Positions 9,060 through 61,804 of a stretch of 64,000 bases of DNA are shown here, one piece after another. Source of the stretch: Paraphysomonas bandaiensis (taxonomy: Eukaryota > Protista > Chrysophyceae). How positions within the stretch are numbered: position 1 is the stretch's first letter; each line of letters begins with the position of its first letter. The notes under the pieces were generated by a model. That model was not told the origin of the DNA. It did no database searches and saw only the letters and a list, made by a program, of their open reading frames with translations. Location: the NCBI GenBank assembly GCA_965644295.1, contig CBFFRP010000457.1, forward strand, positions 161,704-225,703. The letters run 5' to 3'. Both the position numbers and the translations under genes were made by a program.

Positions 9060-9089
<30 letters not shown>

Positions 9090-9254
9090 TGTATGTATGT
9101 ATGTATGTATGTATGTATGTATGTATGTATGTATGTATGTATGTATGTATGTATGTATGTATGTATGTATGTATGTATGTATGTATGTATGTATGTATGT
9201 ATGTATGTATGTATGTATGTATGTATGTATGTATGTATGTATGTATGTATGTAT
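9060..9254 (+). repeat. (TATG)n microsatellite
   Basis: Perfect tetranucleotide array. Confidence 0.98.
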
Positions 9255-9323
9255 AGCTATGTGGTTCAGTGTATGTATGTGTGATGGGATTATAGTCATA
9301 TATATGTGTATCTATAGATCTGT

Positions 9324-11367
9324 ATGATGTCTGGAGACTCCGAACTCTACCAGTGCATAATCTGTCATGAACCTTACCGCCGAGAGGGTCGTTTATCTCC
9401 CGTAACTCTCATGTGCGGTCACTCTCTGTGTGTGGGGTGTTATGAGTCTCTTCCCTCATCATCAGCATCATCAGCAGCATCTTCCTCCTTATTATGTCCC
9501 ATATGCTCTCTTCCATGTCCCCCTCCATCCAAAAACACAACTCTATTAAAAGAGATTGCTTCAAGAGAGCTCGCATCATGTTCATTGGCTATACATACAC
9601 TGTGCAGTGAGTGTATGAGGACAACGAGCTCTGTATGCTGTGAAGAGTGCGATCGGATGCTATGCAGAAGATGTGACGATCGTCTACACAGACAGGGAGA
9701 TAGAACACAGCATCTGAGAGAGTGTACGCGAACGGAAGAGACGGATATGTGTGCCAGTCATATGCATCCGCTGACTCAGTACTGCAAGACGTGTGAGCGA
9801 TCTGTATGTGATGATTGTGCCTCGACTGGTGAACATGCTGCTCACGAGACGGGTGATCTAAAAAGCGTTGCTGCTAAAATAGAGAAGCGCATGTCCAACT
9901 ATAGGAAAGTACTGGAGCAGATATGCGCCGAAACGAGCTCGATGTCCTCTAATATTGAGCAATGTTTAGGCAATGCAGGTGTTGGTGATGAGAAAAATTC
10001 AGAATCATCATCTTTACGTAACGAGTGGAAGCAAACAGCAAGGAATTCTATCAACCAAACTTTTGAAAAGCTACATGCTGCTTTGCACAAACGACGCCAG
10101 GAACTGCTAACCATGGTGGATAACGTATACGAGGAGAAAAAGCTGCATTTGCTCGGACAAAATGCAAGCGCCAATAATCTCCATCGGAGTGCACACGAAT
10201 TGTTAGAAAAAATCGAAGAGTTTCCGCCGGATCGGGAGGCTTCTTTGGTTAGTTTGTACGGGGAACTACAAGAACAACTTGATGATTTAAACGAGGTCGA
10301 TATACATACTATGATAGGCCCCGTAAATGACCTACGAGTCCACACTTCTTTTGATACCAAAGACCTCGATGTGCTGTTTAGCATAGTTCATACCCTGGGC
10401 ACTGTTGGTGAGAAAGGAGAAGCTGGAAGGGATGTATCACAAAATAAAACTACCAGATCACGGTCTCCCGCCCCCTCTTCTTCGATAGGATCGAAGGGTG
10501 ACAATCGACCTGTCGGAAATATTGAGGAATCCGCTCCCCTGTCATTTGATGACTTATACGTAGGTATGGTTGTCGTGTACAGTTTATCTGGACTTATATG
10601 ATATGTGTGGAGAATGTTGAGTCCGTATGATTTATGTTTGCTTTTTTAGGGATGAGGGTGGACGCTCTCGATACTGTGAATAGATGGGCAGAAGCGGAGG
10701 TAAACGCCAACGTTCACGTCATTTTTGGTATATAATATCCTCTGCTACTACTAGTGCGGTGCATGACAACTACTCGCATACGATTACGAGATCTGACTGT
10801 GTACAATGTATTTCACTCTCCCTGTAACTGTGAACTGCCGTATTGTTCAGGTTTTAGAACTCGATGCGGGTGAGCGGGAAGTGCTTGTGTCGTACGTTTA
10901 TTGGCCCTCTGAGTGGAATGAATGGTTGCCTGTAAGAAGCGATGTAATTGCTCCTTTGAAAACGCACACCCTCTGCGCTGGGCGTGAGATTTGCGTGGGC
11001 CAGAGGGTAGAAGTATGTAATGGTGGAAGCGAATGGAGGGAAGCTTTCGTAACTAATGTCAATGGCTATCAGGTTTGAAGCAACTTCGCGTTACAGTCTG
11101 CATTTGCGTTGTTTTCTTGAGTTATGAGTGCTGCACTGCATGTATTTTAATGCGTGCACCTTATCATGATTGTAGATAATTAGGTACATGTAGGTGGAAG
11201 TCCTGTATGAAGACGACAAGCAGAAGGAGCGGAGCTTAACTGTGGATACTCGTATGGATCGTATCCGACAGTATGGTATTGCGGCTCAACCAAAGAAAAA
11301 AAGAGCAAGTACGTCGTCGTCAAAGTCGAATAATAGTAAGCAAGGCAAAAAGAAAGCACGTGCGTGA
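9324..11367 (+). CDS. RING / B-box / coiled-coil (TRIM-like) protein with C-terminal Tudor/MBT-like repeats
   Basis: CxxC..CGH..C RING, two B-boxes, coiled coil. Spliced exons GMRVDALDTVNRWAEAE, YVYWPSEWNEWL. Confidence 0.85.
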
Positions 11368-11388
11368 TACTTTTGTTGCCAACAGTGT

Positions 11389-11573
11389 TCTAGATATTGA
11401 GTTCTTTGGAAATTGTTATCTTTGGATGTGTTTGAACTGATATTTTTCACTGGTTATATCATAAAATAGTTACTACTGCTTTTGTCATCTAGATATTGAG
11501 TTTATTTTTGGAACTTTTATTTTGGATGTGTGCGAACTGTTATTTTTCACTGATTATATCGTATAATAGTTAC
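11389..11573. repeat. ~100-bp tandem duplication in 3' flank
   Basis: tctagatattgagtt...atagttac occurs twice. Confidence 0.8.
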
Positions 11574-11621
11574 AAAATGTACGAATTTTCGATACCTTCC
11601 CTCGATACCCTTATGTGGTAG

Positions 11622-11753
11622 TGGATGTCCTATTATTAGCAATAGGCGTTTAAAAGTCAGAACTGGCTATATATGCGGCTCACGCTAGTTTCCCGGAGAA
11701 CTATCTCCGGTACAGATTGTACATATCCCTAGACCCGACTTTGTTGAGGGCTA
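11622..11753 (-). mobile_element. Minimal (132 bp) non-autonomous retroposon, family R
   Basis: 11-bp TSD TTATGTGGTAG (11611-11621, 11754-11764); family head joined directly to family tail. Confidence 0.75.
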
Positions 11754-11907
11754 TTATGTGGTAGGGGGTAGGGGTACATTGTTGTAGCGTTGTAAAATTT
11801 GGGGATTTACTGTTTTGAGTTAATCTAGAATCTAGTACAACACCATTCCCTAAGCTTTTGTGTAGGATTGATTAGAAACAATACTTTGATTTGTAATCGT
11901 TTTTATA

Positions 11908-13113: not shown

Positions 13114-13479
13114 GTAATCGTTTTTATAATTCTAATCAGGAGCATCTCTATTTCCTTTAATAGCGAGTAACAAGCTAAATTTCTATACATTCTAAATATT
13201 ATAAACATTAGGCTTTTAGCATCATGAAGATATGATATGATACGTAAAAACTCTATTATCCTACGAGAACTGCTTGTGTGTTGCCGCAAACACCAAGGTA
13301 CGAATTCTCTCTATATTATTCATAGGAGTGTGTGTAGGGGACGTTTTACACGTATAGCATGACAAGTGAAAGCAGTGATCTACAGCCACACTGAAACTCT
13401 TGAGGCTACACATACATATTTACGGCAGGCACCAGAGGGGAAGCAGCAAATACCCTTTTGAGTACGTTCTTTACAGTCA

Positions 13480-14218: not shown

Positions 14219-14289
14219 TAATTGCATTCCTTGGGATGTACTGGTGCTTAATATTATATTATATATTATGCTAGATATAGAACAAAGCT

Positions 14290-14656
14290 CTATATCGAAG
14301 CACAATCTAATGTTGTTGAGAGGCACTTTAGTCGTACAAAGTTGATTATGACACCTGAGCGTAGAGACATGAACCATATTGTCTAGAATCATTGCTATTC
14401 CTACGAGCCAAAATTACATGTTGTGTGTTGTGGGATGCTGATACTCTCCATGAAGCCCTGCAAGAAGACCTATGTGCCGGTGGAGAGCGAGTAGTAGTTA
14501 CGCTTCGTAGTCTGTTATTTAACTAAATTAGTAATTAAGGGACCAGCACACTATCTATTAGGAGGGGTATTCTCTACTTAGTAGGTATTAATGGCCATTA
14601 TAATTGCCGGGAACTGGACTACCATTAACAGGCCATTTATGGTTACCAGGCCCTGG
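14290..14656 (+). mobile_element. hAT transposase 3' relic and terminus
   Basis: SNVVERHFSRTKLIMTPERRDM motif; ends ...ggccctg. A similar end occurs at 34225-34362. Confidence 0.6.
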
Positions 14657-16815: not shown

Positions 16816-17507
16816 CCTTGACCTTTAATAGGAGTGATGACTAGAGTAGAAGTGATGTGATAGGTAGAACAGCTGTGTATATATAGAGAGAGAGGCACGA
16901 TATCATACATACATGTATATACACACCCCAGTGCACAGCAGCGTATCGTTCGAGAGGGAGGAAGCATCCATAGGGTTCATATGGGGGGATCTCCACCAAC
17001 CATTCAATCGCTAACAGCACAGTCCGACAGATTCTATCCAATCATTTATCTATACTTAGTTTTCATTTGTTTATATCTTTTAGAGCAGTTATTGTATATA
17101 CTTCATCTGTACTACATCAAGAATACACCGTATTACATTAAGAATATTCTGGAGGTCCCCGACACCCACACCACCCTCAGGCCCTTCGTACGTACGTTCC
17201 CATGTCTAAGGTACGTGATACGGTGCATTCAGTATCAGTCCATCCTCCCTCCTACCTCAAGTCGAATGTGAAGTATGACGTGTGTGTATCCTGCTGCCTG
17301 TAATCTCATACTATACATACACAGTACAGACCCGCCCCATACCATACTATGGTCTTCATACTGCCCTGAAGTCTTAACTTCCTCCTATATATGCTTCTGT
17401 CTCTATATATACACGTATAGATGAGTGGATCACATGAACAGCCTCATATCACACACATACACACATACACACATATAACACCACAACACTCTCTCTAATC
17501 TCTCCCT

Positions 17508-21330: not shown

Positions 21331-21426
21331 CTGATTAGAGATACTATATATTGTACAATACATTGCAATAGTATTGTTGGACCGCTTTTAAAACCCCACC
21401 CATGCTATAGATGGGACTCTATGTAG

Positions 21427-25548: not shown

Positions 25549-25911
25549 ACGCTATACTGGGCACACTCTGCACTGTTGGAGGGTTTATATACTGCAGTAC
25601 AACCAAAACGAGTGTTCGCTTAAAATCACTGATTTATATATAAACCTACAGTTTTAAATGAAAATTCCCTATTTTATATATGTATATACAGTATGTATAT
25701 ATGTATGTAAGTACTGTAGGTAGGTACATGCATGTATATATGTACGTGTACCCTGGTATGGGTGTGTTAATCTCATATGTATGTATGTATGTAAGTACTG
25801 TAGGTAGGTACATGCATGTATATATGTACGTGTACCCTGGTATGGGTGTGTTAATCCTCATATGTATGTATGTATATGCAGGTGATCGGGGTACATGTGC
25901 ATGTGTATTGC

Positions 25912-27698
25912 ATGAGTATGAGGTGGATGTTGTTAGTCTTGTTATTGTTGGTGTTCTCAGTGGTGTTGTGTGATGATGTGCCGGAGTGGACGGGTGGGGT
26001 CGTTAACGGGCAGGTGAGCCACCAACATACACATGCATGTGATGGCTATGCATGCATTCACTGCATCTATCTCACCGTATCTATCTCACTGCATCTATCT
26101 CACCGTATCTATCTCACTGCATCTATCTCACCGTATCTATCTCACTGCATCTATCTCACCGTATCTATCTCACTGCATCTATCTCACCGTATCTATCTCA
26201 CTGTATCTATCTCACTGCATCTATCTCACTGTATCTATCTCACTGCATCTATCTCACTGTATCTATCTCACTGCATCTATCTCACTGTATGTAGTTTGAG
26301 GTCGAGAGTTTCTTGGGATCCGGCTCATATGGATGGGTATACCGGGGGCGGGATGTCCGTACCGGTCATCTGGTCGCCTTAAAGGCGGAGTCTGTTAATG
26401 CCACCAAGTCGAAGCTGCCATATGAATGCGACATACTGGAGCGCATTAGAAACATAAGTACGTGCATGCATCTCATGATGGAGACAACAGTGTCATGTGC
26501 AGTGCACTGAGTGACTGTGCTGCAGGTGATCACATAGTGAAGCTGCACTGGTGTGGATATGCGGGCCTCCATAATGAGTATAGAGTGTTAGTAACAGATC
26601 TCTACGGCAAAAGCTTAGAGAGTGTAGAAAACGATGATCACATGAAGGATATCAAATATTTGAACCGCGTGAAAAATGTGGGCCGACAGATGGTCTCGAC
26701 ATTGGAGATACTGCATGATGCCGGTATGTGAATGAGGTTATTTTCTTCTTAAGCACGCACAGTATATACACGCAGTAGGCTTATGTGAAATGCAAAATTG
26801 GTGTATATGTTCGTGGTGATGATATAATGTGCAGGTGTGATTCACGTTGACATCAAGCCAGCCAATATAATGGAAGACCGTGCAAATAAGAACAAGTACA
26901 TACTCATCGATTTTAACCTAGCACGGTTGTACATTCGCGATGGCAGGCATATTTTATACAATGATGGGGGGCGGCGGTCAGGCACACCTAGATACATGTC
27001 CTTCAATAGCATGTTACGCACAGGTACTGAAAAAGTACATGAGTAGGATTTGGGGATGATATGTGTATATATAATCGAGCTCCTGTTATATGATACAGTT
27101 ATGGTGACACTGCAATCCTGATGATGTATCCCAATATTTTTCAGAGCTATCACGGAGAGACGACTTAGAATCTCTGGCCTACGTACTGATATCACTATTA
27201 AAACCACTCCCTTGGTCAGGAATAAGCGCCAATAACACGCGCGAGAAAAATCTGAGGCGCATACAGGCAAGGATGAAAGAATCCATTGACACTCTCTGCG
27301 AGGGACTACCAGGTATGCAATGCTTTTGATATATGCCTTCCATAGCAAGGAGAGTATTGACAGCACAAGTAGTAGCATTACGTGGTATTTGGAGGAACCG
27401 TGATAATATTAGTGGAGTACTGTACAGCATACGTGGATTTTATTTTTTGTATATTGTAGAAAGTATTCTGTACATTCACTGTTGTTTTCAGTATTGTGTA
27501 TTGTTGGTTTAATAAAGTTTAGAATATGGGTATAGCATACTGTGTACTATATATATGCCCAGGGTAGGTGTGAGCAAAACTGATATGTTTATTATCATTA
27601 TAGGAGAATTTAATGCTTTCATGAGACATACGAAATCTTTGGGATTCTATGAGCGGCCGAATTACGACTTACTGAGAAGCTTATTGGACAGCATGTGA
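25912..27698 (+). CDS. Casein kinase 1-like kinase with N-terminal signal peptide, 6 exons
   Basis: MRWMLLVLLLLVFSVVLC; LGSGSYGWVY, VALKAE, HVDIKPAN, DFNLA, GTPRYMS, TPLPWSG; last exon EFNAFMRHTKSLGFYERPNY. Confidence 0.85.
26059..26290 (+). repeat. 14-bp minisatellite (cacYgYatctatct)n within intron 1
   Basis: About 16 tandem units between the GT at 26014 and the AG at 26294. Confidence 0.95.
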
Positions 27699-31559: not shown

Positions 31560-31586
31560 GGTCTCTGGTCTGTATGAGTGCTATGA

Positions 31587-31895
31587 GGCCCTCAGCATGT
31601 ATGTATGTGTGTATAGACGACTAGGAGAAGAAGGAGGACCAGGAATACAGCAGTATAATAACTATGTATACTGCTGTGTACAGTCTCTGGTCGGCCCCTC
31701 AGCATGTATGTATGTGTGTGTATAGACAACTGTGAGAAGAAGAAGGACGAGGAATACAGCAGTATAATAACTATGTATACTGCTGTGTACAGTCTCTGGT
31801 CGGCCCCTCAGCATGTATGTATGTGTGTGTATAGACGACTATGAGAAGAAGAAGGACGAGGAATACAGCAGTATAACTATGTATACTATGTACAG
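31587..31895. repeat. Three ~110-bp tandem units upstream of moaA
   Basis: gccc(c)tcagcatgtatg...aggaatacagcagtataa repeated three times. Confidence 0.9.
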
Positions 31896-39869: not shown

Positions 39870-40391
39870 TTATGCATAATCGTCAAGAGCTGGGTCGTAT
39901 ACATTGTAGTTAGCAGCTCTTTCCTTGAATTTGGCACCATAGACCGGTAGAATCACGAGAGTATTTAGAAACAGAAAAGAAAGTGTATAAATAAGATACC
40001 CAACAGCCATAAATGGAAGAGAAAATATAAAGAACAGCAATGCGCAAACCATCCCCATTGCCGTCTGCTTGTTGCTGTCTGTCCCAAGATTCCATAAACC
40101 CTTCCCGACAAACATAACGCCCACATGAACACAGTGACACACATAGTGACCCACCACAAGAAACACGAAGACGGTAACAAACACTGTAGCTAAGATTGCA
40201 TAGCCCAGAGAGTTCCATACTGTGCATAGTGCACCCGGCAGAGAGCCCTGCCGCTCATCAACGACACACGCCTGCTGCTCCTCGTCAGATAACACCTCAA
40301 TCCTCTCCGCAACAACAGCATCCCCCACAGGATCAGCCCTTGGAACAACTGTATGCTCACTTTGACTATCCTTAGCGACACCTTCACTCAT
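39870..40391 (-). CDS. Small multi-pass membrane protein
   Basis: MSEGVAKD start at 40391; hydrophobic segments. Confidence 0.6.
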   Translation of the reverse strand: MSEGVAKDSQSEHTVVPRADPVGDAVVAERIEVLSDEEQQACVVDERQGSLPGALCTVWNSLGYAILATVFVTVFVFLVVGHYVCHCVHVGVMFVGKGLWNLGTDSNKQTAMGMVCALLFFIFSLPFMAVGYLIYTLSFLFLNTLVILPVYGAKFKERAANYNVYDPALDDYA

Positions 40392-40422
40392 CCTCACCAC
40401 TGAAGAACTTTGCTCATACTTC

Positions 40423-40567
40423 CATACACACATACATACATACATACATACATACATACATACATACATACTTCCATACACACATACATACATACATACA
40501 TACATACATACATACATACATACATACATACATACATACATACATACATACATACATACATACACAC

Positions 40568-40598
<31 letters not shown>

Positions 40599-41036
40599 CA
40601 TACATACATACATACATACATACATACATACATACATACATACATACATACATACATACATACATACATACATACATACTTCCATACACACATACATACA
40701 TACATACATACATACATACATACATACATACATACATACATACATACATACATACATACATACATACATACATACATACATACATACATACATACATACA
40801 TACATACATACATACATACATACATACATACATACATACATACATACATACATACATACATACATACATACATACATACATACATACATACATACATACA
40901 TACATACATACATACATACATACATACATACATACATACATACATACATACATACATACATACATACATACATACATACATACATACATACTGTACATAC
41001 ATACATACATACATACATACCTACATACATGTATGT
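40423..41036 (-). repeat. (TATG)n microsatellite, ~600 bp
   Basis: (CATA)n on + with recurring variant units. Confidence 0.98.
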
Positions 41037-41848
41037 ACGGAAAATGGCGTTTTCTGATATTTTTTCTGGTTTTATAGTTGTATAGTGTTGCTTTTCTCTA
41101 ATATCCGGATATTTCGTACTGATACAAGCCTATAAAAGTAGAGATTTACAGGCATATCTTACTGTATAGCTATAGCTGGGCACCTTCAGAGGTGCTTGAG
41201 AGGCCCTCGAGTCAAGTGAGTCTCCTGGCCCACACTCATCTGACAATGATACTGACATACGAGTCATACCGTGTGTGTTGTATACTCGTAAACATCATCA
41301 GCACAGCTGCACTCATTGTCTCATAGGCACACAGCTGCACTGCTGCGCCTCGTATGATCGTTGACATCTAGAAGAGTATCGCAGGCGACTCAATGCATGG
41401 AAGTCCATCGCTGGTTGCTATCAGAGTGCTACCTACAGAGATGTCAGTGTGGAGCTATAGGCGAAGAGACAAGACACAGTCGTGTATACCGCAGCAGTGT
41501 TAGTTCTATCCAGTCGGCCTTAGCTTTCACTCAACGATTGAAGTGATTGATGCTGAGTTTGGCTGTTTGCGAGCACTGAAAGCATTTGAATGATGACCGT
41601 TAATGGGGGAATACAGAAGTGTTTAACAGTATTATGCGAACTAACGTCATGATAGTAATCAAGTAGTAGTGTGGCTGAGATATACTGACCGTATAAGGTC
41701 GTGATGTATCTCAGATTATGTCAAAAAGATTCGTAGTTGCAGTAGCATAGATTTGGCGATTGACAATAAATAAATGGTAAGTGATATTGATCATGATTTT
41801 ACTAGTTTATAATTCAAGCATTGAGTGTGTATATTACGCTTTTATAGT

Positions 41849-42868
41849 TGCATTCATGCACCAACAAGTGCGCAACTATACAACACGATTTAGTTAGCTA
41901 CAGGGCCATAGAAACGAGTTGCGTGTTTAGTCGGATCATACGCTCCTGCCCAATCTACTAGTCCTGACATAAACAACTTGCGGTCCGTGCTCTTCGGCAG
42001 ATCTTTAGGGCCCTTCAAGACGATGTTCACAGAAGCAGGTAGTCTGAAAGGGAGAGTAGCGTAGCTCTAGCGCTGGGTCCTCCCAACGTCACGAGGCGGC
42101 CTCACAGGTGCATTTTTTCTCACACTGACGCTTGAAACAGACGTCTACCAAAATCCAAACTGGTTCCTAAACGTCTTCCCTCCATTATTGCGTGCATTCG
42201 TCCAGCACATGCACCCACCTTGCACTCTTCTGCCGAGCGACTTCGCTAGTAGGAAGCCCTAGCTTTCTCCTCTCGGATGAAAGCCTATTAAGACGAAGTA
42301 TCATCACAACACCACCAATGTACCTATCACTGCTTGGAGAACAGTGCCAGAGCCTTTTTATAATTTCAATGACCTGGGTCAGGAGAAACCAACTAAGCAG
42401 TAGACTTGTAGTAGACATAATAGTAGGTCTAATCACATTGCCGAGGAAAGTTTGACGCATTACCTCTGTTATTGACCACAGAGATGCCAAGTACTTTAAA
42501 CATATATTCGGCATCAATCACACTTAAAGCAAACGTAGTGAGCAAGCAGAATGTTGGTATACCTGTAATCTGTTGACTCAAGATTTTCGAGTCCTCAGGG
42601 TGATCTCATCCCGGATACTTGTCTTCAGTAGGCAGACCAACCCCCGGATGACTTTGAGGTGGGCCTATTCCCGGATGCCTGTTTATTCGTCAGGGCTCTA
42701 CACAAGTGACATTTATTTGTGCCCCTTGCACCACACAAGAATTTGGCCATAAGTGGGGGGAAATTATCTGCTGAGTGTGTATATGCGGCTCACGTTGGGT
42801 ATTCATCTCTGAAATGTCTCGGGTATTTATCCCCAAGAACACCACGAAAAGGTGTGAGTCCGACGTCG
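41849..42868 (-). mobile_element. Long family R retroposon copy lacking the tail motif
   Basis: Colinear with 12010-13105; 8-bp flanking repeat TTTATAGT. Confidence 0.75.
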
Positions 42869-43296
42869 TTTATAGTGATAACAGAATGAGCAAAAGTCAA
42901 TATTATACAAGAGCTATTAATGAACTACGTTGAACTACAGCATTTTGTTAAGCTAAACTTAACACAAGGATGTGAATAGAAAAATCAGAATAGTTCTGCG
43001 AATATTACTAATAATAGAGCTTGGGTATTCGACATCTATTCATAAGAAATACTGTTTTCGCAGTCAGACAGTTTTGCTAGGTCTGAGCTCTAAAGTGAGG
43101 AAACCGTTATACTCTGACGATAATTTTTGCTTCAGGATCATGGCATATAAAAGTACACGCAGTACAACATATACATGAATTAGTCGTCTAAAAACAGAGA
43201 AAATCCTATATATCATTTGTGATGTCACTTTTGTCATATTCGGATAATGAAACTTAAGTAACTGAACTTGAACTCACACACAGTAAAAAAAACAGA

Positions 43297-44240
43297 GATA
43301 TAGGGAACAATATAATAGCAATACCATTGTTAGGTAGCGTTCCGTCAATATTATTTTAAACCGATCCAACAATATTGCTATGTATGTATCATTACTCCCA
43401 CCTTTTCGTAGTGTTCTGGGGGATAAGTACAGGAGATATTTCTCCAGGAAAAACTAACGTGAGCCGCATGTGTAGTCAGCAGATATTGTTCTGCCCACTC
43501 ATAGCCAAATGCTTGTGTGGTACAAGGAACACTAATAAATGTCACTTTTGTAAACGTCTTTGGGCCTTATTGACGAATACACAGGCATCCGGGAATGGGC
43601 CCACCTCAAGGATTTTGTGTGATAGAGCGAAAGTGGTTGCATCTTGGTGCTTGGTGCTTGCGGTGCCGTACAAGCAGCTTTCGTAGAGCTAAATAGCAGA
43701 ATATCAGAGTTAAGCATTGACTCTTAAACGCCTACTGCTAATAATAAGGCATTCACTACTGTATCATTAATCAGTAGGTAAACCCCTCCGTTGATTCCAT
43801 TTTTAGTATACTAGTCAGTAAGATCACACATACATGATAACCAAACCCACAACTCCTTAGCTAATAACTATTTTCTTCCTACTCATTCTCTGAGTCATCG
43901 TCGGTGCCGTCAACATTACCATATATATTCATTCACAAACTTAATTGAAATATGCTTGCATCCGGCCACAACTGTCGATTAGATTTCAGAAACAACAGCA
44001 TATATATTAAGTGTAGTAGGAAGTAGGATGCATAAGTTTACGTAGCGCTGATATAATATATTAGCTGCGGTGAACAGGCGTTCACATGTATTTGAAGTAC
44101 ATACTACATGACTCGTGCACCACGCATACATCTCGTTGTGTGTATGCACCTGTACTTAAATATTTCAAGTTTTCGTTTCTTAATTTTTTGAGCTACCGAA
44201 GAAATTTTTCCGCGTAGCCAACATCAGCCATAAATTGCAA
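43297..44240 (-). mobile_element. Degenerate copy of the 21427 hAT element, interrupted by family R
   Basis: tagggaacaatat end; 43830-44230 matches 21640-21990. Confidence 0.75.
43395..43759 (+). mobile_element. Short (365 bp) family R retroposon
   Basis: 10-bp TSD TGTATCATTA (43385-43394, 43760-43769). Confidence 0.8.
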
Positions 44241-44617
44241 TATATTATAATAAACTTCTGTTATCAACTAGTAAAATTATATTCAACATGTCTTATCATT
44301 CATTGATATCACATGTTCATGTAATACTGTTAACTGCTAACCACTACTGTATTCTTCAAGCAACGATCATAATTTAAATACCTTCTTAGAAATACAGTTT
44401 CCAATTGCTCACAAACAGCAAAACGCAACATGTGAAACATTACTCTTTACTAGAGATAAGGATCAATATGCTACGCCAGTTCAAATCTACTTCCAAAAAG
44501 CGACGGCGATAATTAACTTCACTTGAATATGTGCACTCTTAACTAATAATCTAAGTAATTCACGAAACAAATATTGTAAATGATAAATACGCCACGCTGG
44601 CGAAAAACCAATACCAG

Positions 44618-47600
44618 CTACCACCAGCTTTGCTGATTGCGCTCCTTCAAAAGCTTAGCCATATTTGCAAATTCTTTTGATGCATCTGCTAATTTCGCAC
44701 TCTTATCACTGAGCTGTTCCAATTTTTCTCCACGTTCCTGTAGTTTCAGCTTAGCATCTGCCAAAGTTTCCATGGTCGCAGTCGAGGAAGATATAGTAGA
44801 TTCTGATTTCGACACCTCGGACGATTTACCACTTGTGCCTTTAAACAATGCATCTCTCGAAGCAGAAATTTTATCCTTATCTCGGGAGTCTGGTGATATA
44901 ATATCGCCGTGCTGAACAGGTGGTAGAGGCATATTTCCTTTGCCAGACATGAAGGCTTCCGCTCGAGCGATATCGATTCGATGTGAAACGACGTTGTAAC
45001 ATCCATCGCATACCCTTACCTGAAAACAGTTTATTTAGTACACTGATAACTACCGCAATGAAGCGTGGCGGGCAACACACTGTTACCTAGCAGCGCTAAT
45101 ACAATAAATTTCATCACATCACTGTTTACTCACCGCCTGCTTGCTAATGGTAACCCTCTTTTTTGAGCATTCATCGCAGCACAATGAGTCACACAATCGA
45201 CAATGGTGTTGTCTACGGAAAATGGTAAACGTCGCACGGCACAGGGTACAGGGAGGAGGTTTTCCAGCTTCAACACATTGTGCAGCGACTGTTGTGGCAT
45301 CACTGTGGTGGTCGAACTCCTTTAAGCTACACGTAAAACATTAAAACAACTGCGAGAGGAGAAATCAAAAATACCTCAATTTAATGTCATCTCCATTAAG
45401 AAGTCCTTTTTTGCTCCACATCGATATCCCTTCATTGATAACAAGCGTTGCATCCTCTGACCTAAGCTCAGATGGTGGACCTTCCTCCGTTCGTCCACCG
45501 TGAGACATGAGCAAAAGTAAACTTGACTGCAAGCCATCTTTCCACCGGGTTACATGTTCATTCATAATATCAATAGGACGGCGCCCCCGGATGTCTGGAA
45601 TGTTAGGAAAAGCTCCATGCTCCAGTAGAACACGGAGAGTAGATATGCTGTCAGCTGGGTTGGTCTGCTCGAGGTCCTCTTCTTGCCCACCACTTCTGAT
45701 CCACGCCTGGAGTTCATCGTCATTTTCATCATTTCCGGCCACCACCCCGTCACCTTCCCCGCCCCTGCTCTGAAGAATTTTTTGGCCCTCTCCAATTGCC
45801 CGCTTCAGTGGCATGCTGCTGCATGCAAAGTGTAAAGGTGTCCAACCGTCCTCGTCGCAATGGATGTTTACATCAGCCACTGATGCGCTGGAATTCGTCG
45901 TGTCTGACTTCGAGAGTAGGGTCTCGATCGCCTGATGCTGCCAGCTTGCACTAAGGTAGTGCAAAACGCTAAGTCCTTCTCTATCCTTGAAATTTGGGTC
46001 CGCGCCTGACTCAATCAAAAACTCGATCGACTTGCTGAGAGCCTGTATGTCGGTATGCCCTTTCACATCACGACCTTCTACGCACGCCAGATATAGTGGA
46101 GTACGGCCTTTATCATCCAAAACATCGACGTTAAACACGTGTGTACATAACATACCCAGTGCTTCGCTGTCTAATTGCAGAGCAGCCCAGTGAAGTGGTG
46201 TCAGACCGCGCCTATCAGGGATAGTTACATCGGCACTGCTTTCATGCAATACTCGGGTGATACTCGTCAGTCGGAGTATGTTGGCATAGTGCAGTGGAGT
46301 GTATCCCTCCTCATCCTGAGTCTCCATATCTTCGAACTCATTTTCACCAGCCAGACATGCCTCCAAAAGAGCGTTGACTTTTCGCACATCTCTCGAGAGT
46401 ACCGCAGCATGCATCGTTCCTATGAGGTACTGGTGTCTCCATCCTATCACTCTCCTGCGCTCTTCCTCATCCACACTCTCACACAAACACTCATACACTG
46501 CCCTCACCCACTCTTCCCTAGTCGTCACGTCTTCACAGATCACTACAAGTGATCCACCTGGATACAATACTTCAAACACCGACTTCGGATTAGTAGTTGT
46601 GCTGTCGATGAGATCCGACTCCACTCGAATATTTATCTTACAGGTGGCGAGGTCGACAAGTGTCTCCACTGCGAACTTATCTCCTTGACTGGCCGTCACC
46701 AGCAACACATCTGTCAAAAGAAATAAATATTTCTTGTTCTGCACATTCCAGAGAGCACGCTTTCCAGCTACTGCCACGGCCCCGTGCTTAACTATTCGTC
46801 TCCCGTCCTTTACTATGATGCTTGTAGAGAGAGCAGTGGCCCGGTCTGCAGCATTTTGTTTCCCTTTCATGATGCGTGTTGCCAAATTTTTTTGCTGCTT
46901 CGGGGGGATACTTTCAGGTCGAGATTCTTTTTCTTTAAAGACAAGGCGGGCCGCCAATTTGCGCAGAGAGATCATATCGGCCGACTCCTCCTCTAGGGAA
47001 AGGGTGGAGTCTGCCTCAGATGCAGCAACCGGAGATATGGGCGGCTCATTTACGGGAACTTCACCATTATCAGGAGATTCACTACCAGTTTCTTGTTTAG
47101 CTGGAATCGGTGTGTTGGCTAACGATTTAACTGATGACTGACTCACAGGAATAGGCTTAACCAGTGACGCAGTTCCAGTGTCCCCTTTATCTACTAATGT
47201 AGGGCTGTCGCTAACTCCAGACGTCGTGGGGGACGAAGTCTGACCAGGTGATACGGCACCAGCTATATTTCCACTCGTTGCTGAAGGTGGTGCAGGAGAA
47301 CTGGACGCTGAAGATGACCCCGATATCGATGGAGGACATGTGTATCGTCGAAAGATCATTTGCAGAGGCCGTTCTGCGTTTTTTATATATTTTACAGTCT
47401 CAGTCCACTGCTCCTTATCTACATGTGTGTCGCCAATGACTCTTTCCCCAACACCCCAGAGTTCATCACCACTATGTACCCCTCCTTCATCCGCTTGAGT
47501 ACCTACTTCCACTTCATGTACATATATAACCCCATCCGCACGGCGTCGAAGTGTCATACCAAGTGGGCCTTCGTCGAACTCTACCACCGACAGGTTCGGC

Positions 47601-48154
47601 CCCGAAGGAGGAGTTGGTAACGCAACACTACTTGGAGGAGATGAGTATGATCGATTAGATTTTGTAACTGCGACAGGCCCCGCATCATCACAGTGCCTCT
47701 CGTCTGAGTGTTGCCCAGTTATCACTTGCAATATTCGAAACATTACTGTCTCTCCGTGACGTGTATCGGACAGGACTAACTTCATACTCCCATCTGAATT
47801 CGTATGAAGTCTTAAGTATTTCATGTTATCACCATGACCAACCACCAACTCAAAGGCACTCATCTCATATGAGTATACGCGTAGCTCAAAGGGTTCCTCT
47901 ATAGAGAAAGGAGCCCATATGAGATCACCGCAACTGTTAGTTTGAAGAGAGACAGCCGTATCCTCATCATCTCTACCCACTAACAACACAGGCACCCCCT
48001 CAGACACCCCTTCACCACACAGCAACAGCACTAAGAACTGCTGCCCCTCTCCCTCCCCCTCCCGCTCAACCACACTCACGACACCGCCACACTCACATGG
48101 AAGGTACAGATGCCGGTCTACAATCTGCACCAGAACCCTTGATCTTGAATCCAT
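44618..48154 (-). CDS. PDZ + PH + ankyrin + FYVE-like + C-terminal R-SNARE motif protein
   Basis: GPLGMTL (PDZ); YLFLLTDVLL..REEWVRAV (PH); GYTPLH/GLTPLH/GWTPLH; FTIFRRQHHCRLC; LQERGEKLEQLSDKS. Confidence 0.8.
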
Positions 48155-48214: not shown

Positions 48215-48447
48215 CACACACATACATACATACATACATACATACATACATACATACATACATACATACATACATACATACATACATACATACATACATA
48301 CATACATACATACATACATACATACATACATACATACATACACTACATACATACATACATACATACACTACATACATACATACATACATACATACATACA
48401 TACATACATACATACATACATACATACATACATACATACATACACAC

Positions 48448-48478
<31 letters not shown>

Positions 48479-48547
48479 CATACATACATACATACATACA
48501 TACATACATACATACATACATACATACATACATACATACATACACAC

Positions 48548-48578
<31 letters not shown>

Positions 48579-48679
48579 CATACATACATACATACATACA
48601 TACATACATACATACATACATACATACATACATACATACATACACACATACATACATACATACATACATACATACACAC

Positions 48680-48710
<31 letters not shown>

Positions 48711-48874
48711 CATACATACATACATACATACATACATACATACATACATACATACATACATACATACATACATACATACATACATACATACATACATACA
48801 TACATACATACATACATACATACATACATACATACATACATACATACATACATACATACATACATACATACATA
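48215..48874 (-). repeat. (TATG)n microsatellite, ~660 bp
   Basis: (CATA)n on +. Confidence 0.98.
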
Positions 48875-49095
48875 CCAGTATATTATCATATATTCCTCAA
48901 AAACTAGAAAAACCCGGATATCTTACCCTTTCCTGTCTCCTCCGGCATGAAAACCCCTCTTTTCTACAGCCTGTAGAGTGCACCACCTCAATCTTGGTGT
49001 GGTCTTGAGATGGCTGCTAGTGTGTGTATATATACATACATATTCTTCTCTATGTTCCAGTGAGGCGTAGCATCAACAGCAACCTCAGTGCTGAT

Positions 49096-50946
49096 ATGAA
49101 TAAGTTTGAGGGGTTGTGGTATGATTCAGAGGGGTTCCCAACTGACACATCTGAGGATCAGGTCAGTATAGACGTACAGAGGGGTGCTGTGTGTATGTGT
49201 ATGTATGTATGTATGTATGTATGTGTATGAGTGTCATTTGAAAGGATGGATGTAACGGTTGATTGATAGAGAGAATGTGAAATGTTTTGCTCTGAGTTTC
49301 TCGTGTCTCCAGAGGAGTGTTCGAAGGTCAGTCTCTCACTCTCATTGCTGTCTATTGGCTTATAGAAGTAACGTGGACACAGGCGGTGTTGCGTGATATG
49401 AGGGCGCAGGGTCTGCTGGATGACGACAACTGCATATCTCTCCTGCGGATAAAGTGATTTCATTTGATTGTTTTTATACTGAGAATAAAATGCATCTTAC
49501 AGACACACGCGCTACTTGAAGTCTAACATGTCAAGTTTGCCGCAAGGATTCGCAAGTTTGGATGCGAGGTACACACGATTATTTTATGATTAACGTCTCA
49601 TATTTATGTAGTCGCCCGTGGATAATGTACTGGATAACACACTCACTATATCTTCTTGATGCGGAGGATCCAACTATTAGTAGCGGTGTGATACGCACTT
49701 TGCGCAATATCCAAAATATCGACGGTGGGTTTGGTGGTGGACCACAGCAGCTGTCCCATGGGTAGGCTGCATTTTACGTATCTCTTTTTGCACCCTATCA
49801 CACGCTATTAACATGTAGAGCACCTAACTATGCCTCGGTTATGACACTCTGTGAGATATGCACTGAAGCGTCTCTTTCCCTGATTGACAGGTGGGCAATT
49901 CCTACGTAATATAATTGCTGGTGTTGATATGTCCCAGGGGAGCAATGTATAACTATTTAATCAGCATGAAACACCCCGGTGGAGGTTTTAGAATGCACCG
50001 GTACGTGTATAATGAAAGTATACATGTAGTCATTATACTCGCAGAGATGGCGAAGTAGATACCAGGAGCTGCTACACAGCCCTTGCTGTTGCCCGACTTC
50101 TCAATATCCTCACAGCAGGTATTCATTACTCACAATCCGCTTGAAGCAGGGTCGTGTTGTAATTTATTTTGGTATAGAGCTTGTTGCTGGGGTGGCGGAC
50201 TATCTTCTCTCCTGCCAGACATATGAGGGTGGGTTCGGAGGAGAACCTGGCAATGAAGCACACGGAGGGTATAATTTTTGTGCTCTGGCTGGCCTTATAA
50301 TTCTGGGCGAGGTGAGTAGTTATTTACTTCTGCTTGATATATTGATCGAGCATGCGCAGGGACACAGGTGCAATATACAAGCGCAGAGGAGGTGGTTACT
50401 GAGCATGCAAACCCGATTGGAAGGGGGGTTTCGAGGGCGGACAAACAAGCTAGTTGACGCCTGTTACTCATACTGGCAGGGCGCGGCATTCTCTCTCCTG
50501 GCGCTTCTGGAGGCTGGCCTGACAGACACTGGGGACTGTTACGGTCAGTCTGATGAGCATTGTTTGGATATGAATAGCCTCGCGCTGCAGAGGTATATTC
50601 TTCATTGCTGTCAGCATCTTGAGGGTGGGCTCAGGGATAAACCGGGGAAAAATCGAGATTTTTATCACAGGTATCAAGTTGGTTATGCCTGGTGTCCCTT
50701 TTTCTTACATGTTTCTGAAGCTGCTACGCCTTGTCCGGGCTCTCGATTGCGCAGCACGGGCTGTATGGCACAGCTGTGACGAATACGAGTGGTAGGCTGT
50801 ATGGGGCCACAGATAATTTGTTGAAAAGAACGTCGTGTGTGTTTAATATTGGTTGCGACAGACTTGTTAAGTCTATGTCTTATTTTTCCTCCATGCCCTC
50901 TTCTCATGACGAACTGTCTAGTATGTATAGTCAACATACCTCTTAG
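49096..50946 (+). CDS. FNTB: Protein farnesyltransferase beta subunit, many short introns
   Basis: LDASRPWIMYW, GGFGGGPQQLSH, CQTYEGGFGG..EAHGGY, GRTNKLVDACYSYW, GGLRDKPGKNRDFYH. Confidence 0.93.
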
Positions 50947-55115: not shown

Positions 55116-58100
55116 TGTTAGAAATAGACATTTTTAGTAATAAGACCTTCGTTAACACTTATATGGAATATTATATAATTATGAGTGATACCATACTTCA
55201 TTCATTGACGTTCACCAACTCTTTCTATCTCTACTACACCAACCATTTCTAGTACGATCTTATATCGTCACTATCTTGTACAGTCAGTATATTTCAGTTT
55301 TATCACTACAATGGCTATCATATTATTGGTTCTCATACTACAGCTAGCTACTACTGTATTCTTTGAGTAACGGATATAATTCTAATATCTTGGAAACTAC
55401 AGCTTTTAATTGCTCACAAACAGCAAAACTCAACACTCCCTCTCAATTCAAAGCTGTAAAACATGGCATAACTGACGGATACGCAACCACCGAAACCGTA
55501 TAGGACAAACCGGTGGACGTATGGCTCCGACGTTTCAGCTAGCCTCTCCGTAGACAACACGTTTATGAGCCTCTGTTTCGTTTGTATGAATTCTCTCTGA
55601 TGACATCCACAGATGACTTCTGATCTTCTCCTAGACATCTCTTTCTATGCTTCTCGTATATAACGCCACACAAAGATTTCGTAAATATGTCTGCAGTCTG
55701 GTTATCAGTTCCAACGTGATACAATATCGCAGTGTTAAAACGTCCTTCTGGATCTACATGTTCACGCACCCAGTGGTATTTGATTTCAATGTGTTTTGAT
55801 CTTTTGTGGAACACTGGATTTAATGCTAGATCACGAGCACTCTGGCTATCTAAAAAGAATGGAGTGGGTTCGTACAGTCGAAGTCCCAATTCGGCCAACA
55901 CCCCCCGAAGCCACACCAGTTCTTGCATGCCAGCGTACATAGCTTGGTACTCACTCTGCATTGAAGACGTAGACACAGTAACTTGTAAGATTGATTGCCA
56001 GGTGAGTGGTCCACCTGCTGCAAACACAATGTATCCAGTTGTCGACCTTCGTGACACAGTATCGCCTGCCCAGTCAGCATCTGTGAAAATATGCATGTCA
56101 AAGCTCTTACCACTGAACCGAATACCTTTCCGCACAGTACCCCTGATGTATTGTAACAAATAAGTCATCAACTTGCATGTAGCCTTTGTTGGTTTCGAAG
56201 CATATCGTGACAATAGGCCAACAGCATACGCAATATCTGGACGCGTATTCATTGATAGATATAGCATGGCACCTAGTAAGCTACGATAGGGATAATTGTC
56301 GACTCCCTCTTCCTCCTGAGATGAGTTCTCACTATCAGTGCAATTAATCCTGTCCATGGCATCTACAGGTAGTGGGGATTTGCGAACTTTGTTTGAAGGT
56401 CCAAGGAATGCTGCATATTTGGTGAGAATTTTTTCAGCGTATGTCGATTGGTCAAGTTGAATATAATTCTTGGTCCTTGTAACTCGAACGTTGAGAAAAT
56501 GCTCTAATTCTCCCATGTCTGACATGTCAAATCTTTCACAAAACCGTTTCTTGATTTCTGTCAAAATAGTCAGATCCGCACAAGCGATTACTATATCATC
56601 AACGTATATGGTTAAGTACACACGATGACCTTTGTACATCATATAATATAGGTATGGTTCTAAAATACAGGGTTTGAATCCCAAAGACTTTATAAATCCA
56701 TGTATGGTCTTCCACCATGAACGTGGAGAACTCCGAAGGCCATATAGTGAGCGATATAGTTTGAAACAGTGTCCTGGTGGCAACTGAAAATCGGGAGGAG
56801 GGTCCATGTACACGTCTCCTTCGATTTTAGCATAACAGAATGCATTCGACACGTCAAGTTGATGGATGTGCATACTAAACATGAAAGCAAGTGCAATGAT
56901 TAGTCTAACCGTAATCGATTTCACCACAGGAGCAAATGTATTTTCGACGTCTATACCTGTCCTTTGACCATATCCCAGAGCGACCAGACGAGCTTTATGC
57001 TTTTTTATTGATCCATCTTTATTGTATTTTCGTTTGAACACATATCTGGACTTTAGAGGTCTAACACCAGGTGGCGTCTCAACGACATTAAACACTTCCC
57101 GCTTGAATAATGCATTCCGTTCTAATCGTCTAGCTTCCTTCCAATTTGAAGCTTCAGGACATGTCAATGACTCTTCATACGTCTCAGGCTCTCTATAAGT
57201 AGACGAGTTAGACATAAGTGCGCAATCACTCTCATCACACAAGTTAACAATCTCCTCGTCATGGAGAAGGTTTACCTCACCCAGGGTGGACACATTAGTC
57301 AACACCCTTCGGGTTCGCGTACGTTTACCACTGGTCTCCCTTGACTCAGCATGTACAGTACCACTATTCTCACTGGGCACACAAGAAGGTACATTCTCAA
57401 AGACACGATTCGCGCTGACCCCACTCGGTACAGCACCCGCACTACTCTCCGGCAAAGTACGAAGGGACATTCTCTTCCCTGGAATCTCATCCGCCGTAGA
57501 CTTATTGGGCGTGTCACCCGAAGCCGGCGTAGATGACGATCCACCTCTCTTGTCGTCACAAGAACGAGGTTTTGAGTACAGCCTGCGGTTATAGTCACCA
57601 GTCAACTCGGCAATATCACGTACGTGAATAGGGACTTTTTCTTCTATCTGCTCTTTCCCAGCAGTTACTAGCGCCCTAAACGCCACAATTAGTCCTTTTC
57701 GCACCACAACTCTCGTAGTCTTGAAGAGAAACCCGTCGTCCACATGATACGAACCAATCAGATGTTTAAACTCTTCAACTGATCGATCTAATGGGTCAGT
57801 TTTGACTAAGGCCTCTTCAAGCTCTGCATAGTACTCCTTATCTCTTGGAGGTATACTTTCATCATACAGAACATGTACTGATACGACTTCTTTGTCACCA
57901 AGCCACACACGGGATCCCTTTTTCGTATTGGATAGACCTATGAAATACCCAGTCTGTGACTTCTCCTGCCAATCCTTTCGACGATCACCTTTGGGAATAA
58001 GCACATAAGCCTTGCACCCCCAGCGTCGAAATCTCGATAAGTCAGGGACTGAACCTCCTGGAACGCACTCCATTGGAGACATCCAACCTCGATATGTACG

Positions 58101-60317
58101 TGTAGGCATTCGTCGAACGATCATGCATGCATATACATAAGCATCCCACCAAAAAATTACGGGTAATCCTGAGTCCATTAACAGAGCCAGAGTCATTTCT
58201 CCCAATGTTCGATTCCTACGCTCAGATACACCATTCATCTCAGGGCTGTCTGTGGAGCTCCAAGTGATGCTAGTTCCAAACTTGCTCATTAAGTATTGCT
58301 GAATGGACTTGTCGATCAACTCAGCCCCCCCATCCGAATGGTACTGTATCAACCGGTGTGAACCGGGATATGTAGGGAGTTTACGCTCAACCCAGTCCTT
58401 CACGCAACTCAACACCTCATTCGCAGACCGTGTCTCCAACGGATATTCCCAAAACTCCTTGGTGGCTATATCTGATAATGTCAGAACATATTTATATCCT
58501 TGTCTGGATGGGCAATTGAAATATACAGCAATGTCCACAGAAACCTTCTCAAGGAACTCTGTAGCTTGCAGTTCGTCATCTCTCTTTGCGGTGAATGATT
58601 TCCTTGTCATCTTTGATTTTGCGCAAGCCTTACAAATACCTTTCATTTTTCGTAAACTCTTCTTGCTGAGATGTCGTCGGGTTAATCCGCTCCCGGTAAA
58701 AAGTCTGTGTTTAAATGCTTCAATCAGCTTATGTTTGCTGACGTGTCCACAGCGCTTGTGTAACATCTCTAACGGATCTTCATGCACCTTGTCGGACAAA
58801 TATACTTCCTCCGGCATTGTCAAATTTGGAAGATCAAGTATTTCCTGTAAGTTTACGTAAGGCATTCCGTTGCTTGAGTAGGTTGCCTCCAATACAGTCT
58901 CCCCAGTATCAAGTCGCACAACAGTGGGGTTGTTCAACAACTGCAATCCATACCCGTGAGAACGGAGTATTCCTCCAGAGCAGATATTCTTGACTGATCC
59001 AGGGCAGATCTTGATGTCAGTCCAATCGCCAAAGCCTCCAGTTTCCTCATAGTGTAAACTTGATCCAGCTCTGGTTGTCTGGATATCTCCATCCTCCATC
59101 CACATACATAACAGCCATCTGATTTTTTCTTCTCGTTGTTGTCTCTGCGACTCTCAGATCGATTCCTAGCGACTCGACTCTTTCCCTGCCTTCTTAATTT
59201 CGCAATCTTAAGATCTCTCTTCTTCTTCCAGCACGATTTCTGTGAGTGGCCCCGTTTGCCACATTTGGGATAGCTGCACACCTCATTTTCATCAGCAGTG
59301 GAATTCATGTTTACTTCGTCGGTGCCTTCTTTCGGGACACCTTTTGCCTGATCGTATCTCCTGCATATGGTGATCATATCAATAAAGGTTATGTCACCTT
59401 GTAGGTAGAGATTGGTGTACAGTTGCTCCAAATCGCTTCGTGTTTCGAGGGCAGTCTGTAACTTCGTTTTTTTAGCGATGTCAGTGGGTGGTTCCCCCAA
59501 CTCGGACATTTTTTGACAGATGCCGTTTAGTCGATCGATTGCTGCGCACACGAGTTCCCCCGGTAGAATTTTGAATCCTGCAAACTTCTTATTCAATTCA
59601 ACTAATTCATATTGGATTTCCCCTCTAAACCGAACAATTAACCTAGAGATGAGTTCACTCGCTAACTGCTCTTTATCAGGATGGTCCTGCGGGAGCATAT
59701 CCTTTTCCCGGAAGTACTGATCCACGATCTCAAGGGCTTCAGCGACTGGTTGAACAGCTTCAAATATCGAACTGATGCACGTGTCTTTCCTCTCCAGCCA
59801 CTTGTCCAGATCCTCCTTGTACTTATTTCGGACTGTCACTGGCGCATTATTTGCTGGTCTTACTGGACGGTCCTCTAGACCCAGATGGTTCCTGTTCTTC
59901 CTCATCAACCACACTTTCAGATTCTTTGACCAATTCACTACACCGAACTGATCAAATTTGGGAAGAAGTTTCCACTCCGAACTACTGTCTGCTACCATGT
60001 TAGAAATAGACATTTTTAGTAATAAGACCTTCGTTAACACTTATATGGAATATTATATAATTATGAGTGATACCATACTTCATTCATTGACGTTCACCAA
60101 CTCTTTCTATCTCTACTACACCAACCATTTCTAGTACGATCTTATATCGTCACTATCTTGTACAGTCAGTATATTTCAGTTTTATCACTACAATGGCTAT
60201 CATATTATTGGTTCTCATACTACAGCTAGCTACTACTGTATTCTTTGAGTAACGGATATAATTCTAATATCTTGGAAACTACAGCTTTTAATTGCTCACA
60301 AACAGCAAAACTCAACA
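55116..60317 (-). mobile_element. Ty1/copia LTR retrotransposon, recent, with gag/protease deletion
   Basis: 320-bp TG..CA LTRs (55116-55435, 59998-60317), identical by eye; TSD AAGGT; PBS TGGTAGCAGA; PPT; INT-RT(YVDD)-RNaseH(DADWAG) order. Confidence 0.97.
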
Positions 60318-60863
60318 AAGGTACGCCAGTGATAATAAAGGAATATACAAAATATAAACTACAGGTGAATTGTTAATTAACACACATGTACGAGGCTGTG
60401 CCACACTGTGGTAGCCACAGCATCAAATTGCGAATATGAAATGAAGGACGAGGAACGTCGTCCAGCCTACCCAATTTAGATTTCAGGAAAATGAACCAGG
60501 AAAATGAAGTAGTATAACTTTTATAATGTAGTGACGATATAGGTGACAGCCCTGTTAGTGAGTATGTACTGCCGATTACCTAATAATATTCTATGCAAGG
60601 CCAACAGCGGCTTTCTCTGATTACGATCAAACCCATCAAGGCGTTTCATACTCTACGCATATTGTAACAGATGTCTAATACTAAATACTTAATGAGAAAC
60701 AAGTTATAATCTTACTGCATGACGACGGGTGGAATAAAAGGGTCCAGATAGCACCATATCATACTGTATATATTACGATTCCATACTCAAACCCCTGACC
60801 CCATCTGTCAAGAGACCATTATAACTGCACTAAAACAATATATTTTCCATTTCAAGTATTATA

Positions 60864-61339
60864 TTACACTTCATCTTCATGAAGCAACATATTCGGGATT
60901 CCATCGTGGATAGGAAATTTTCTACCAGTCTAAACAATATATCAACAGCTAGAGCAAATGTATAAATTAGAACGCACCTCTGGGCATATTAAATACCCTT
61001 CAATAACATGTACCTCGAATAGGATATGATGCAGTGTGCGCAGCAATGTCTCGTCTCTACAATCTTGATCAGGCAACTCCTCCAAGTCACTGATGCTCGT
61101 TATGTTCAGTGCATTAGCTGCAGCTTTCAATGCAGAAAAATTTATCCTCGATAGCATCGCATTCGTTGCTTCTGTTAGTTGATGTCACTCATGCATTGAG
61201 GTGTACTGTAATCATATCTCTCACCTACATCAAAGGGGCACTCCTCCACCTCCACTTTATCAGACTCTATTTGAAGGGGATACCCAGACACAACACCCTT
61301 AATGTTTGACTTCAGCATGTTATGAGTAATGAGACGCAT
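60864..61339 (-). CDS. TRM112: Methyltransferase activator Trm112
   Basis: MRLITHNML..GYPL..LHHILFE..CPE.GRKFPIHDGIPNMLLHEDEV; 3 exons. Confidence 0.93.
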
Positions 61340-61467
61340 GGTGATCACACTTATCACTGACCAGGTTAAACGAGTTGGAATAATGTCACACTCTGCATAT
61401 GAATGAAGCAGATGCTGGATTGGGACAATCAGCACGCGCACCTACCACACCACCACCACATGCTCTC

Positions 61468-61804
61468 TATGTACGTATGTATGTATGTATGTATGTATGT
61501 ATGTATGTATGTATGTATGTATGTATGTATGTATGTATGTATGTATGTATGTATGTATGTATGTATGTATGTATGTATGTATGTATGTATGTATGTATGT
61601 ATGTATGTATGTATGTATGTATGTATGTATGTATGTATGTATGTATGTATGTATGTATGCATGTATGTATGTATGTATGTATGTATGTATGTATGTATGT
61701 ATGTATGTATGTATGTATGTATGTATGTATGTATGTATGTATGTATGTATGTATGCATGTATGTATGTATGTATGTATGTATGTATGTATGTATGTATGT
61801 ATGC
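61468..61804 (+). repeat. (TATG)n microsatellite
   Basis: Near-perfect array. Confidence 0.98.

Follow-up and report, generated by a model that had tools for sequence, protein, structure and literature searches.

(TATG)n/(CATA)n Arrays of Paraphysomonas bandaiensis Lie on the Promoter Side of Genes and Show No Preferred Orientation

The genome of the chrysophyte Paraphysomonas bandaiensis (NCBI GenBank assembly GCA_965644295.1) contains long tandem arrays of the tetranucleotide TATG. Four of them lie in a stretch of 64,000 nucleotides (contig CBFFRP010000457.1, positions 161,704 to 225,703 of the forward strand), hereafter called the window, and a first-pass annotation of this DNA claimed that they are always on the sense strand just upstream of a start codon. 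In this study, we analyzed such arrays in a wider sample of the genome. The arrays occur on the promoter side of genes, in most cases where two genes are arranged head-to-head, and neither neighboring gene is favored by their orientation. Based on these results, we consider it probable, though by no means certain, that the (TATG)n/(CATA)n arrays represent a single, enormously amplified microsatellite that is orientation-free and present only on the promoter side, and that they are variable, largely passive spacers.

Position of the Arrays Relative to Genes

Array boundaries were listed genome-wide, and contigs C1-C25 were sampled in the form of 30 short loci (3 kb each) and 20 longer regions (10 kb each). 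Outside the window, the sample comprises 33 arrays in 212 kb; with the window merged, it comprises 37 arrays in 276 kb, 35 of which are at least 100 bp long. All arrays were brought into the TATG orientation, and the nearest open reading frame (ORF) that passed a length and codon-score filter was identified in either flank, with its direction and first ATG being recorded. A duplicated locus was dropped, as were the inner flanks of two transposon-split arrays.

Of the 49 independent genes called in array flanks outside the window, 47 are directed away from the array (p = 4e-12). The contexts of 24 arrays were determined in segments of at least 9 kb: 19 arrays were head-to-head, five were in a same-strand context and none was tail-to-tail. 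When only the arrays between opposite-strand ORFs are considered, the 19 head-to-head against 0 tail-to-tail cases correspond to p = 4e-6. In addition, no array was present in any of 24 tail-to-tail gaps, whose median size is 1.5 kb by ORF calls. Thus, the link between the arrays and the promoter side of genes is real, and the claim that the arrays lie just upstream of starts is confirmed.

A long array is not an obligatory component of a head-to-head gap. Only three of the eight head-to-head gaps of the window carry one, and the genome-wide estimate given below implies that only a minority of such gaps do so. Short tracts were counted as two-unit TATG words. Their density is 2.18 per kb in seven array-less head-to-head gaps (six of the seven hold at least one) and drops to 0.20 per kb between tail-to-tail genes and to 0.21 per kb in coding sequence (p = 5e-8, from a small sample).

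As for the proposal that TATG is a promoter element, the location was right, but neither the orientation nor the distance is fixed and most promoters have no array. When the DNA preceding 64 starts called from ORFs was searched for core-promoter motifs, the output was too noisy to be of use; all that emerged was a weak C-over-G bias in the last 40-60 bp of the array-adjacent genes.

Orientation of the Arrays

To which strand the nearest start belongs was analyzed for the 27 independent arrays outside the window. The nearest start was TATG-sense in 13 arrays and CATA-sense in 14, two of the latter being borderline. The TATG-sense share of 13/27 has a 95% confidence interval of 0.29-0.68, and with a true rate of 0.9, no more than 13 such arrays would be expected with a probability of only 6e-8. 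The median distance to the ATG is 260 bp on the TATG side and 290 bp on the CATA side (p = 0.6). On both sides, the distance from the array edge to the ATG, which was measured instead of the transcription start site (TSS), ranges from 24 to more than 900 bp, and no fixed distance was found. Neither the fixed orientation nor the fixed distance of a directional core promoter element was therefore observed.

Genes with correctly placed N-termini were verified by Pfam on both sides. The CATA-sense genes encode a Dak1 kinase (61 bp from the array), a Methyltransf_15 protein (cap-methyltransferase-like, 65 bp), an Arm-repeat protein (83 bp), a nucleotide-sugar transporter (124 bp), a PH/TPR protein (128 bp) and an AAA ATPase (141 bp). 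Verified TATG-sense genes encode an aldehyde dehydrogenase (Aldedh, 64 bp), an F-box/Ank protein (108 bp) and a histidine phosphatase (His_Phos_2, 148 bp).

These results show that the arrays are strand-neutral. The claim that they are always on the sense strand does not hold as a rule. Inside the window, all four arrays are TATG-sense (p = 0.06 under an even split), and the window is one among many that were read; this four out of four is a small-sample coincidence. A genome-wide check of array distance and strand against gene starts had been proposed, and the sample served for it: the position of the arrays is non-random, whereas their strand is random.

Abundance and Length Instability

The assembly is eukaryotic and consists of 62.6 Mb in 669 contigs. 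The 40-mer (TATG)10 has 127,451 matches in it, 62,434 in the forward and 65,017 in the reverse direction, so that both strands are equal. Scaled on the arrays read, (TATG)n/(CATA)n amounts to about 0.66 Mb (1.06% of the assembly), distributed over an estimated 1,000-1,500 arrays of 0.1-1.4 kb (25 to 360 units) each.

Array length differs between near-identical copies of one locus. Three arrays are located within 8 kb at C2:66447-74314, and two of these form an inverted duplication that includes the array together with flanking stretches of 189 and 437 bp. These flanks are 99.5-99.8% identical, and the arrays are 624 and 1,441 bp long, a 2.3-fold difference. Copy number changes on a short evolutionary time, with an assembly error being possible at this locus.

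Two of the sampled arrays are split by insertions. At C15:90294-93667, a 3.37-kb element with terminal inverted repeats of about 190 bp divides a TATG array into parts of 108 and 252 bp; its four ORFs (108-165 aa) had no Pfam match. At C25:192702-198788, an array is split by about 4.6 kb of DNA between 212-bp direct repeats that are 99.5% identical. Judged from its ends, the latter insertion looks like a long terminal repeat element. Since two sampled arrays are split in this way, the arrays tolerate disruption.

Two origins of the arrays were considered. An all-against-all BLAST comparison of the 500-bp flanks matched only the local duplication and the two transposon insertions, and the arrays are thus not the tails of one mobile element. 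Hairpin-driven expansion found no support: in single-strand folding, the minimum free energy was 0 on both strands.

Several further features of array structure were observed. At the 3′ end (in the TATG orientation), arrays often decay into TGTG/TAGG variant units, for example GTAGGTAGGTA, on several contigs and in the window at 25692-25875. The 3′ flank was more TATG-like than the 5′ flank in 21 arrays and less so in 6 (p = 0.001); the sample was partly drawn through sharp 5′ boundaries and may be biased in this respect, and we do not rely on this asymmetry. At C53:1174-8079, the 3′ ends of arrays are spaced by exactly 2,291 bp (1174, 3465, 5756 and 8047), and this spacing suggests a tandem repeat of a 2.3-kb unit containing a TATG array. 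In some cases, contig ends coincide with arrays or fall close to them: C10 stops 22 bp beyond an array, and several matches are only a few kb away from the start of a contig. It is probable that the assembly breaks at the longest arrays, so that the lengths given here would be minima.

Arrays, Genes and Other Repeats in the Window

The arrays in the window were detected with Tandem Repeats Finder (TRF), and the features discussed here are listed in Table 1. The four arrays previously noticed at 9060, 40423, 48215 and 61468 exist as described. They are microsatellites with a period of 4, 49-165 copies and 95-100% matches. The TATG-strand start codons that had been placed about 70, 30, 60 and 94 bp downstream were found at 70, 24 (about 30 from the pure part), 61 and 94 bp. 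Pfam supports three of the four TATG-side genes, namely those encoding the RING/B-box, Ank/PH and TPR proteins.

Table 1. Arrays, neighboring genes and short TATG runs in the window
Feature	Position	Strand	Description	Basis
Array 1	9060-9254	TATG on +	48.8 copies, 100% pure; between head-to-head genes	TRF
Array 2	40415-41030	TATG on -	About 154 units, recurring variant blocks; head-to-tail context, no divergent pair	TRF
Array 3	48216-48875	TATG on -	About 165 units	TRF
Array 4	61468-61803	TATG on +	84 copies, 98% pure	TRF
MFS transporter ORF	8019-8852	-	Start at 8852, 207 bp from array 1; CATA upstream	Pfam MFS_1, 1.4e-26, from residue 27
RING/B-box gene	9324-10601	+	ATG at 9324, 70 bp 3′ of array 1; TATG-sense side	Pfam zf-B_box and RING
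173-aa ORF	39870-40391	-	ATG at 40391, 24 bp from array 2 (about 30 bp from its pure part); TATG-sense	No Pfam match
Ankyrin/PH gene	45365-48154	-	ATG at 48154, 61 bp from array 3; TATG-sense	Pfam Ank_2, 5.8e-23, and PH
Prenyltransferase exon	50141-50779	+	Profile positions 150-279 of 304; divergent partner of array 3	Pfam Prenyltrans, 4.7e-50
54-codon open frame	61178-61339	-	Start at 61339, 128 bp from array 4; CATA-sense side	Translation; no Pfam match
TPR protein, first exon	61898-62212	+	ATG at 61898, 94 bp 3′ of array 4; TATG-sense	Pfam TPR_1, 6.6e-11
Short TATG run	2468-2496	+	Head-to-head gap, about 120 bp upstream of ATG 2615	
Short TATG runs	25675-25875	+	Part of an 84-bp tandem unit (2.2 copies), which contains TAGG units as well	
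TATG run	49198-49224	+	6.8 units; inside the GT..AG stretch 49162-49311	

Arrays 1, 3 and 4 are also upstream of an opposite-strand gene. Of the three divergent pairs that had been described, those of arrays 1 and 3 stood, with an MFS and a prenyltransferase-beta gene as Pfam-supported partners, whereas the partner of array 4 is the unverified 54-codon frame. We take the N-terminus of this frame to resemble Trm112, for which Pfam gave no support. Since the prenyltransferase exon covers only the profile positions listed, the first exons of this gene must fall in 48876-50140, on the CATA-sense side of array 3. Array 2 is in a same-strand context and adjoins the start of the downstream gene, as arrays in such contexts do. 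Beyond it, no + strand gene was found in 41031-45364 (4.3 kb), and a synaptobrevin-like - strand ORF is located at 44618-44950.

Arrays 2 and 3 contain variant blocks, such as the interruption ACACACTTAC, that are repeated within and between the two arrays with a spacing of 100-130 bp. The recurrence of these blocks hints at block duplication inside arrays.

Shorter TATG runs had been reported near 2470, 16910, 25700-25880 and 49200. Three of these were recovered as such, but the run near 16910 reads CATA and then switches. The listed short runs fit the pattern of short TATG tracts in head-to-head gaps. The GT..AG stretch that holds the run at 49198 is about 150 bp long and looks like an intron of the + strand gene.

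Other repeats and ORFs were observed in the window. A 14-bp tandem repeat (16.6 copies, 88% matches) is located at 26058-26290, inside the ORF at 25870-26382 and just 3′ of the TATG-bearing 84-bp repeats. A 109-bp tandem repeat at 31589-31887 (2.8 copies) lies in a head-to-head gap, and its unit has a short ATGT/GTGT alternating tract. An intact Ty1/copia-type polyprotein ORF of 1,180 aa is present at 55563-59105 on the - strand (RVT_2, 2e-57; rve; SH3_retrovirus), and another ORF of 368 aa lies at 58934-60040 on the same strand.

Discussion

If the arrays are largely passive spacers, as we think probable, short TATG tracts, which are common in head-to-head gaps, would serve as seeds. The seeds would grow and shrink fast by slippage or unequal exchange in DNA that is presumably open and untranscribed. 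Arrays would survive only in the middle of a head-to-head promoter, because an RNA carrying the TATG strand would gain start codons and GTATGT donors. The core promoter and short 5′ untranslated region (UTR) of each gene would then fit into the 25-300 bp that separate its ATG from the array, and the array would be a variable spacer that abuts two ordinary promoters and, in the tightest cases, would have to underlie them. Where the ATG is only 24-65 bp from the array, the transcription machinery would overlap the array edge, unless the 5′ UTRs are extremely short.

Several points weigh against the arrays being passive. The ATGs at 24-65 bp would put some transcription machinery on the array, and "passive" may be too weak a word. 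Tail-to-tail gaps match head-to-head gaps in size, and it is difficult to see how tolerance alone would leave them entirely free of arrays. A single motif with 95-100% purity could result from selection or protein binding. That the arrays are untranscribed is what we infer. The gene calls depend on ORF length and a weak codon score (0.12 nats per codon), the starts are first in-frame ATGs, and the 33 arrays outside the window were all drawn from contigs C1-C25 through particular boundary types.

The arrays might instead be an active, orientation-free chromatin or topology element of head-to-head promoters, an explanation that we regard as a serious but less likely one. TATG is a perfect pyrimidine-purine alternation (Y-R-Y-R) with 25% G+C. 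Such an element could melt or flip to the Z-form and thereby absorb the negative supercoils of divergent transcription. Other possible functions are the exclusion of nucleosomes, the insulation of the two promoters from each other or the binding of a repeat-reading protein, with the copy number tuning both genes. The positional specificity is extreme (19 head-to-head against 0 tail-to-tail, with 47 of 49 flanks pointing away), and the short tracts are about 10-fold enriched in array-less head-to-head gaps; together, the lack of tail-to-tail arrays and this enrichment favor more than tolerance. The use of a single motif at high purity is consistent with such a role, and strand neutrality is what a duplex-level element would predict. 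However, five of the eight head-to-head gaps of the window have no long array, the lengths of 0.1 to 1.4 kb show no preferred size, the paralogous arrays differ 2.3-fold in length and transposons are found inside arrays. Moreover, TA steps are poor Z-formers, which counts against the Z-form mode. In a bolder and more doubtful form of the idea, TATG tracts, from two units to kilobase arrays, would mark head-to-head promoters throughout the genome as an orientation-free architectural code. Bound by protein or in a non-B-DNA form, they would separate and tune both genes, and fast copy-number change would produce heritable expression variation at at least 1,000 loci. Precedents for an active repeat are the (ATGT)n promoter repeat of Plutella xylostella ABCC2 (PMC13710865) and the Z-DNA-forming TG repeat of the HO-1 promoter (PMC3664823).

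Other explanations have little probability. It appears very unlikely that the arrays are sense-strand elements, whether as directional promoters or as expandable 5′-UTR introns spliced from a GTATGT donor to an AG where the array ends. This idea was suggested by the nearest ATG being on the TATG strand in four of four window arrays, by two arrays ending in AG and by the short TATG run inside the likely intron at 49162-49311. The wider sample gave 13 against 14, and the verified CATA-sense genes are 61-141 bp from arrays on a strand that contains no GT, AG or ATG. The AG endings are indeed present at 9256 and 61806, but an AG within 6 bp of the array 3′ end was found in 29% of arrays as compared with 34% of random control positions, and there is no excess in general. 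Furthermore, arrays reach 1.4 kb, while the sole intron-like stretch seen is about 150 bp. Since the CATA strand is without GT and AG and yet flanks as many and equally close genes, the 5′-UTR intron fails as a general model; an array may still be spliced out at single TATG-sense genes. The proposal that the arrays are an ApT platform for N6-adenine DNA methylation (6mA) found no support, and we judge it extremely improbable. Each unit has one symmetric ApT, and the genome encodes an MT-A70 family protein (C68:13194-14555, 453 aa). The only solved-structure match of this product is the METTL4-like 7cv6 (3e-26), not an AMT1/MTA1-type enzyme, and it is the single candidate found, with the count being a lower bound (at least one MT-A70 gene in the genome). 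The dense symmetric ApT sites near gene starts resemble the ApT 6mA territories of AMT1-encoding eukaryotes (PMC7145601; PMC12695648). However, the known territories are downstream of the TSS, in linker DNA (PMC12695648), whereas TATG arrays are upstream, and no AMT1-type enzyme was found here by a search that gives lower bounds. Finally, we see hardly any chance that the arrays or their lengths are products of mis-assembly. Some contigs do end at or near arrays, and the lengths of pure repeats are hard to assemble. Against this, the arrays are internal to contigs with unique gene-bearing flanks, they carry locus-specific interruptions, both strands are equally frequent, and the inserted transposons have intact terminal repeats.

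The arrays share features with several known systems. In the (ATGT)n promoter repeat of Plutella xylostella ABCC2, at least 27 units recruit E(z) and silence the gene, so that length switches the chromatin state (PMC13710865). This repeat is of the same class (ATGT is TATG in another phase), is located in a promoter and expands and contracts in length. It is a single insect locus, whereas in P. bandaiensis there are at least 1,000 loci with much longer arrays beside apparently ordinary genes. Variable promoter tandem repeats that tune expression in yeast and other eukaryotes are in nucleosome-poor regions (PMC3899988, PMC10027321), and they are similar in being unstable repeats in promoter DNA with fast copy-number change. 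The present arrays differ in consisting of one tetranucleotide, in their 25 to 360 units, in making up about 1% of the genome and in their near-exclusive head-to-head placement. Z-DNA-prone repeats such as the human HO-1 (TG)n (PMC3664823; PMC8053131) are comparable in their perfect alternation, their location at a site of negative supercoiling and their freedom of orientation. In TATG, half of the steps are TA, which favors melting over the Z-form. No description of such arrays in chrysophytes was found in the literature. In a metagenome scan with the array-adjacent Dak protein, the only matches had at most 48% identity and were apparently bacterial, and no orthologous promoter was obtained.

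With the strand rule gone, the readings of the arrays as introns, directional promoters or upstream ATGs fall away. The pattern that is left is still unusual: one tetranucleotide takes up about 1% of a compact genome, almost only in head-to-head gaps and, in the sample, never in tail-to-tail gaps. If the arrays act on chromatin or topology, P. bandaiensis would offer more than 1,000 natural length variants for the study of repeats at bidirectional promoters. If they are passive, they would show clearly in which places runaway microsatellites are tolerated by a genome, with transposons using them as landing pads.

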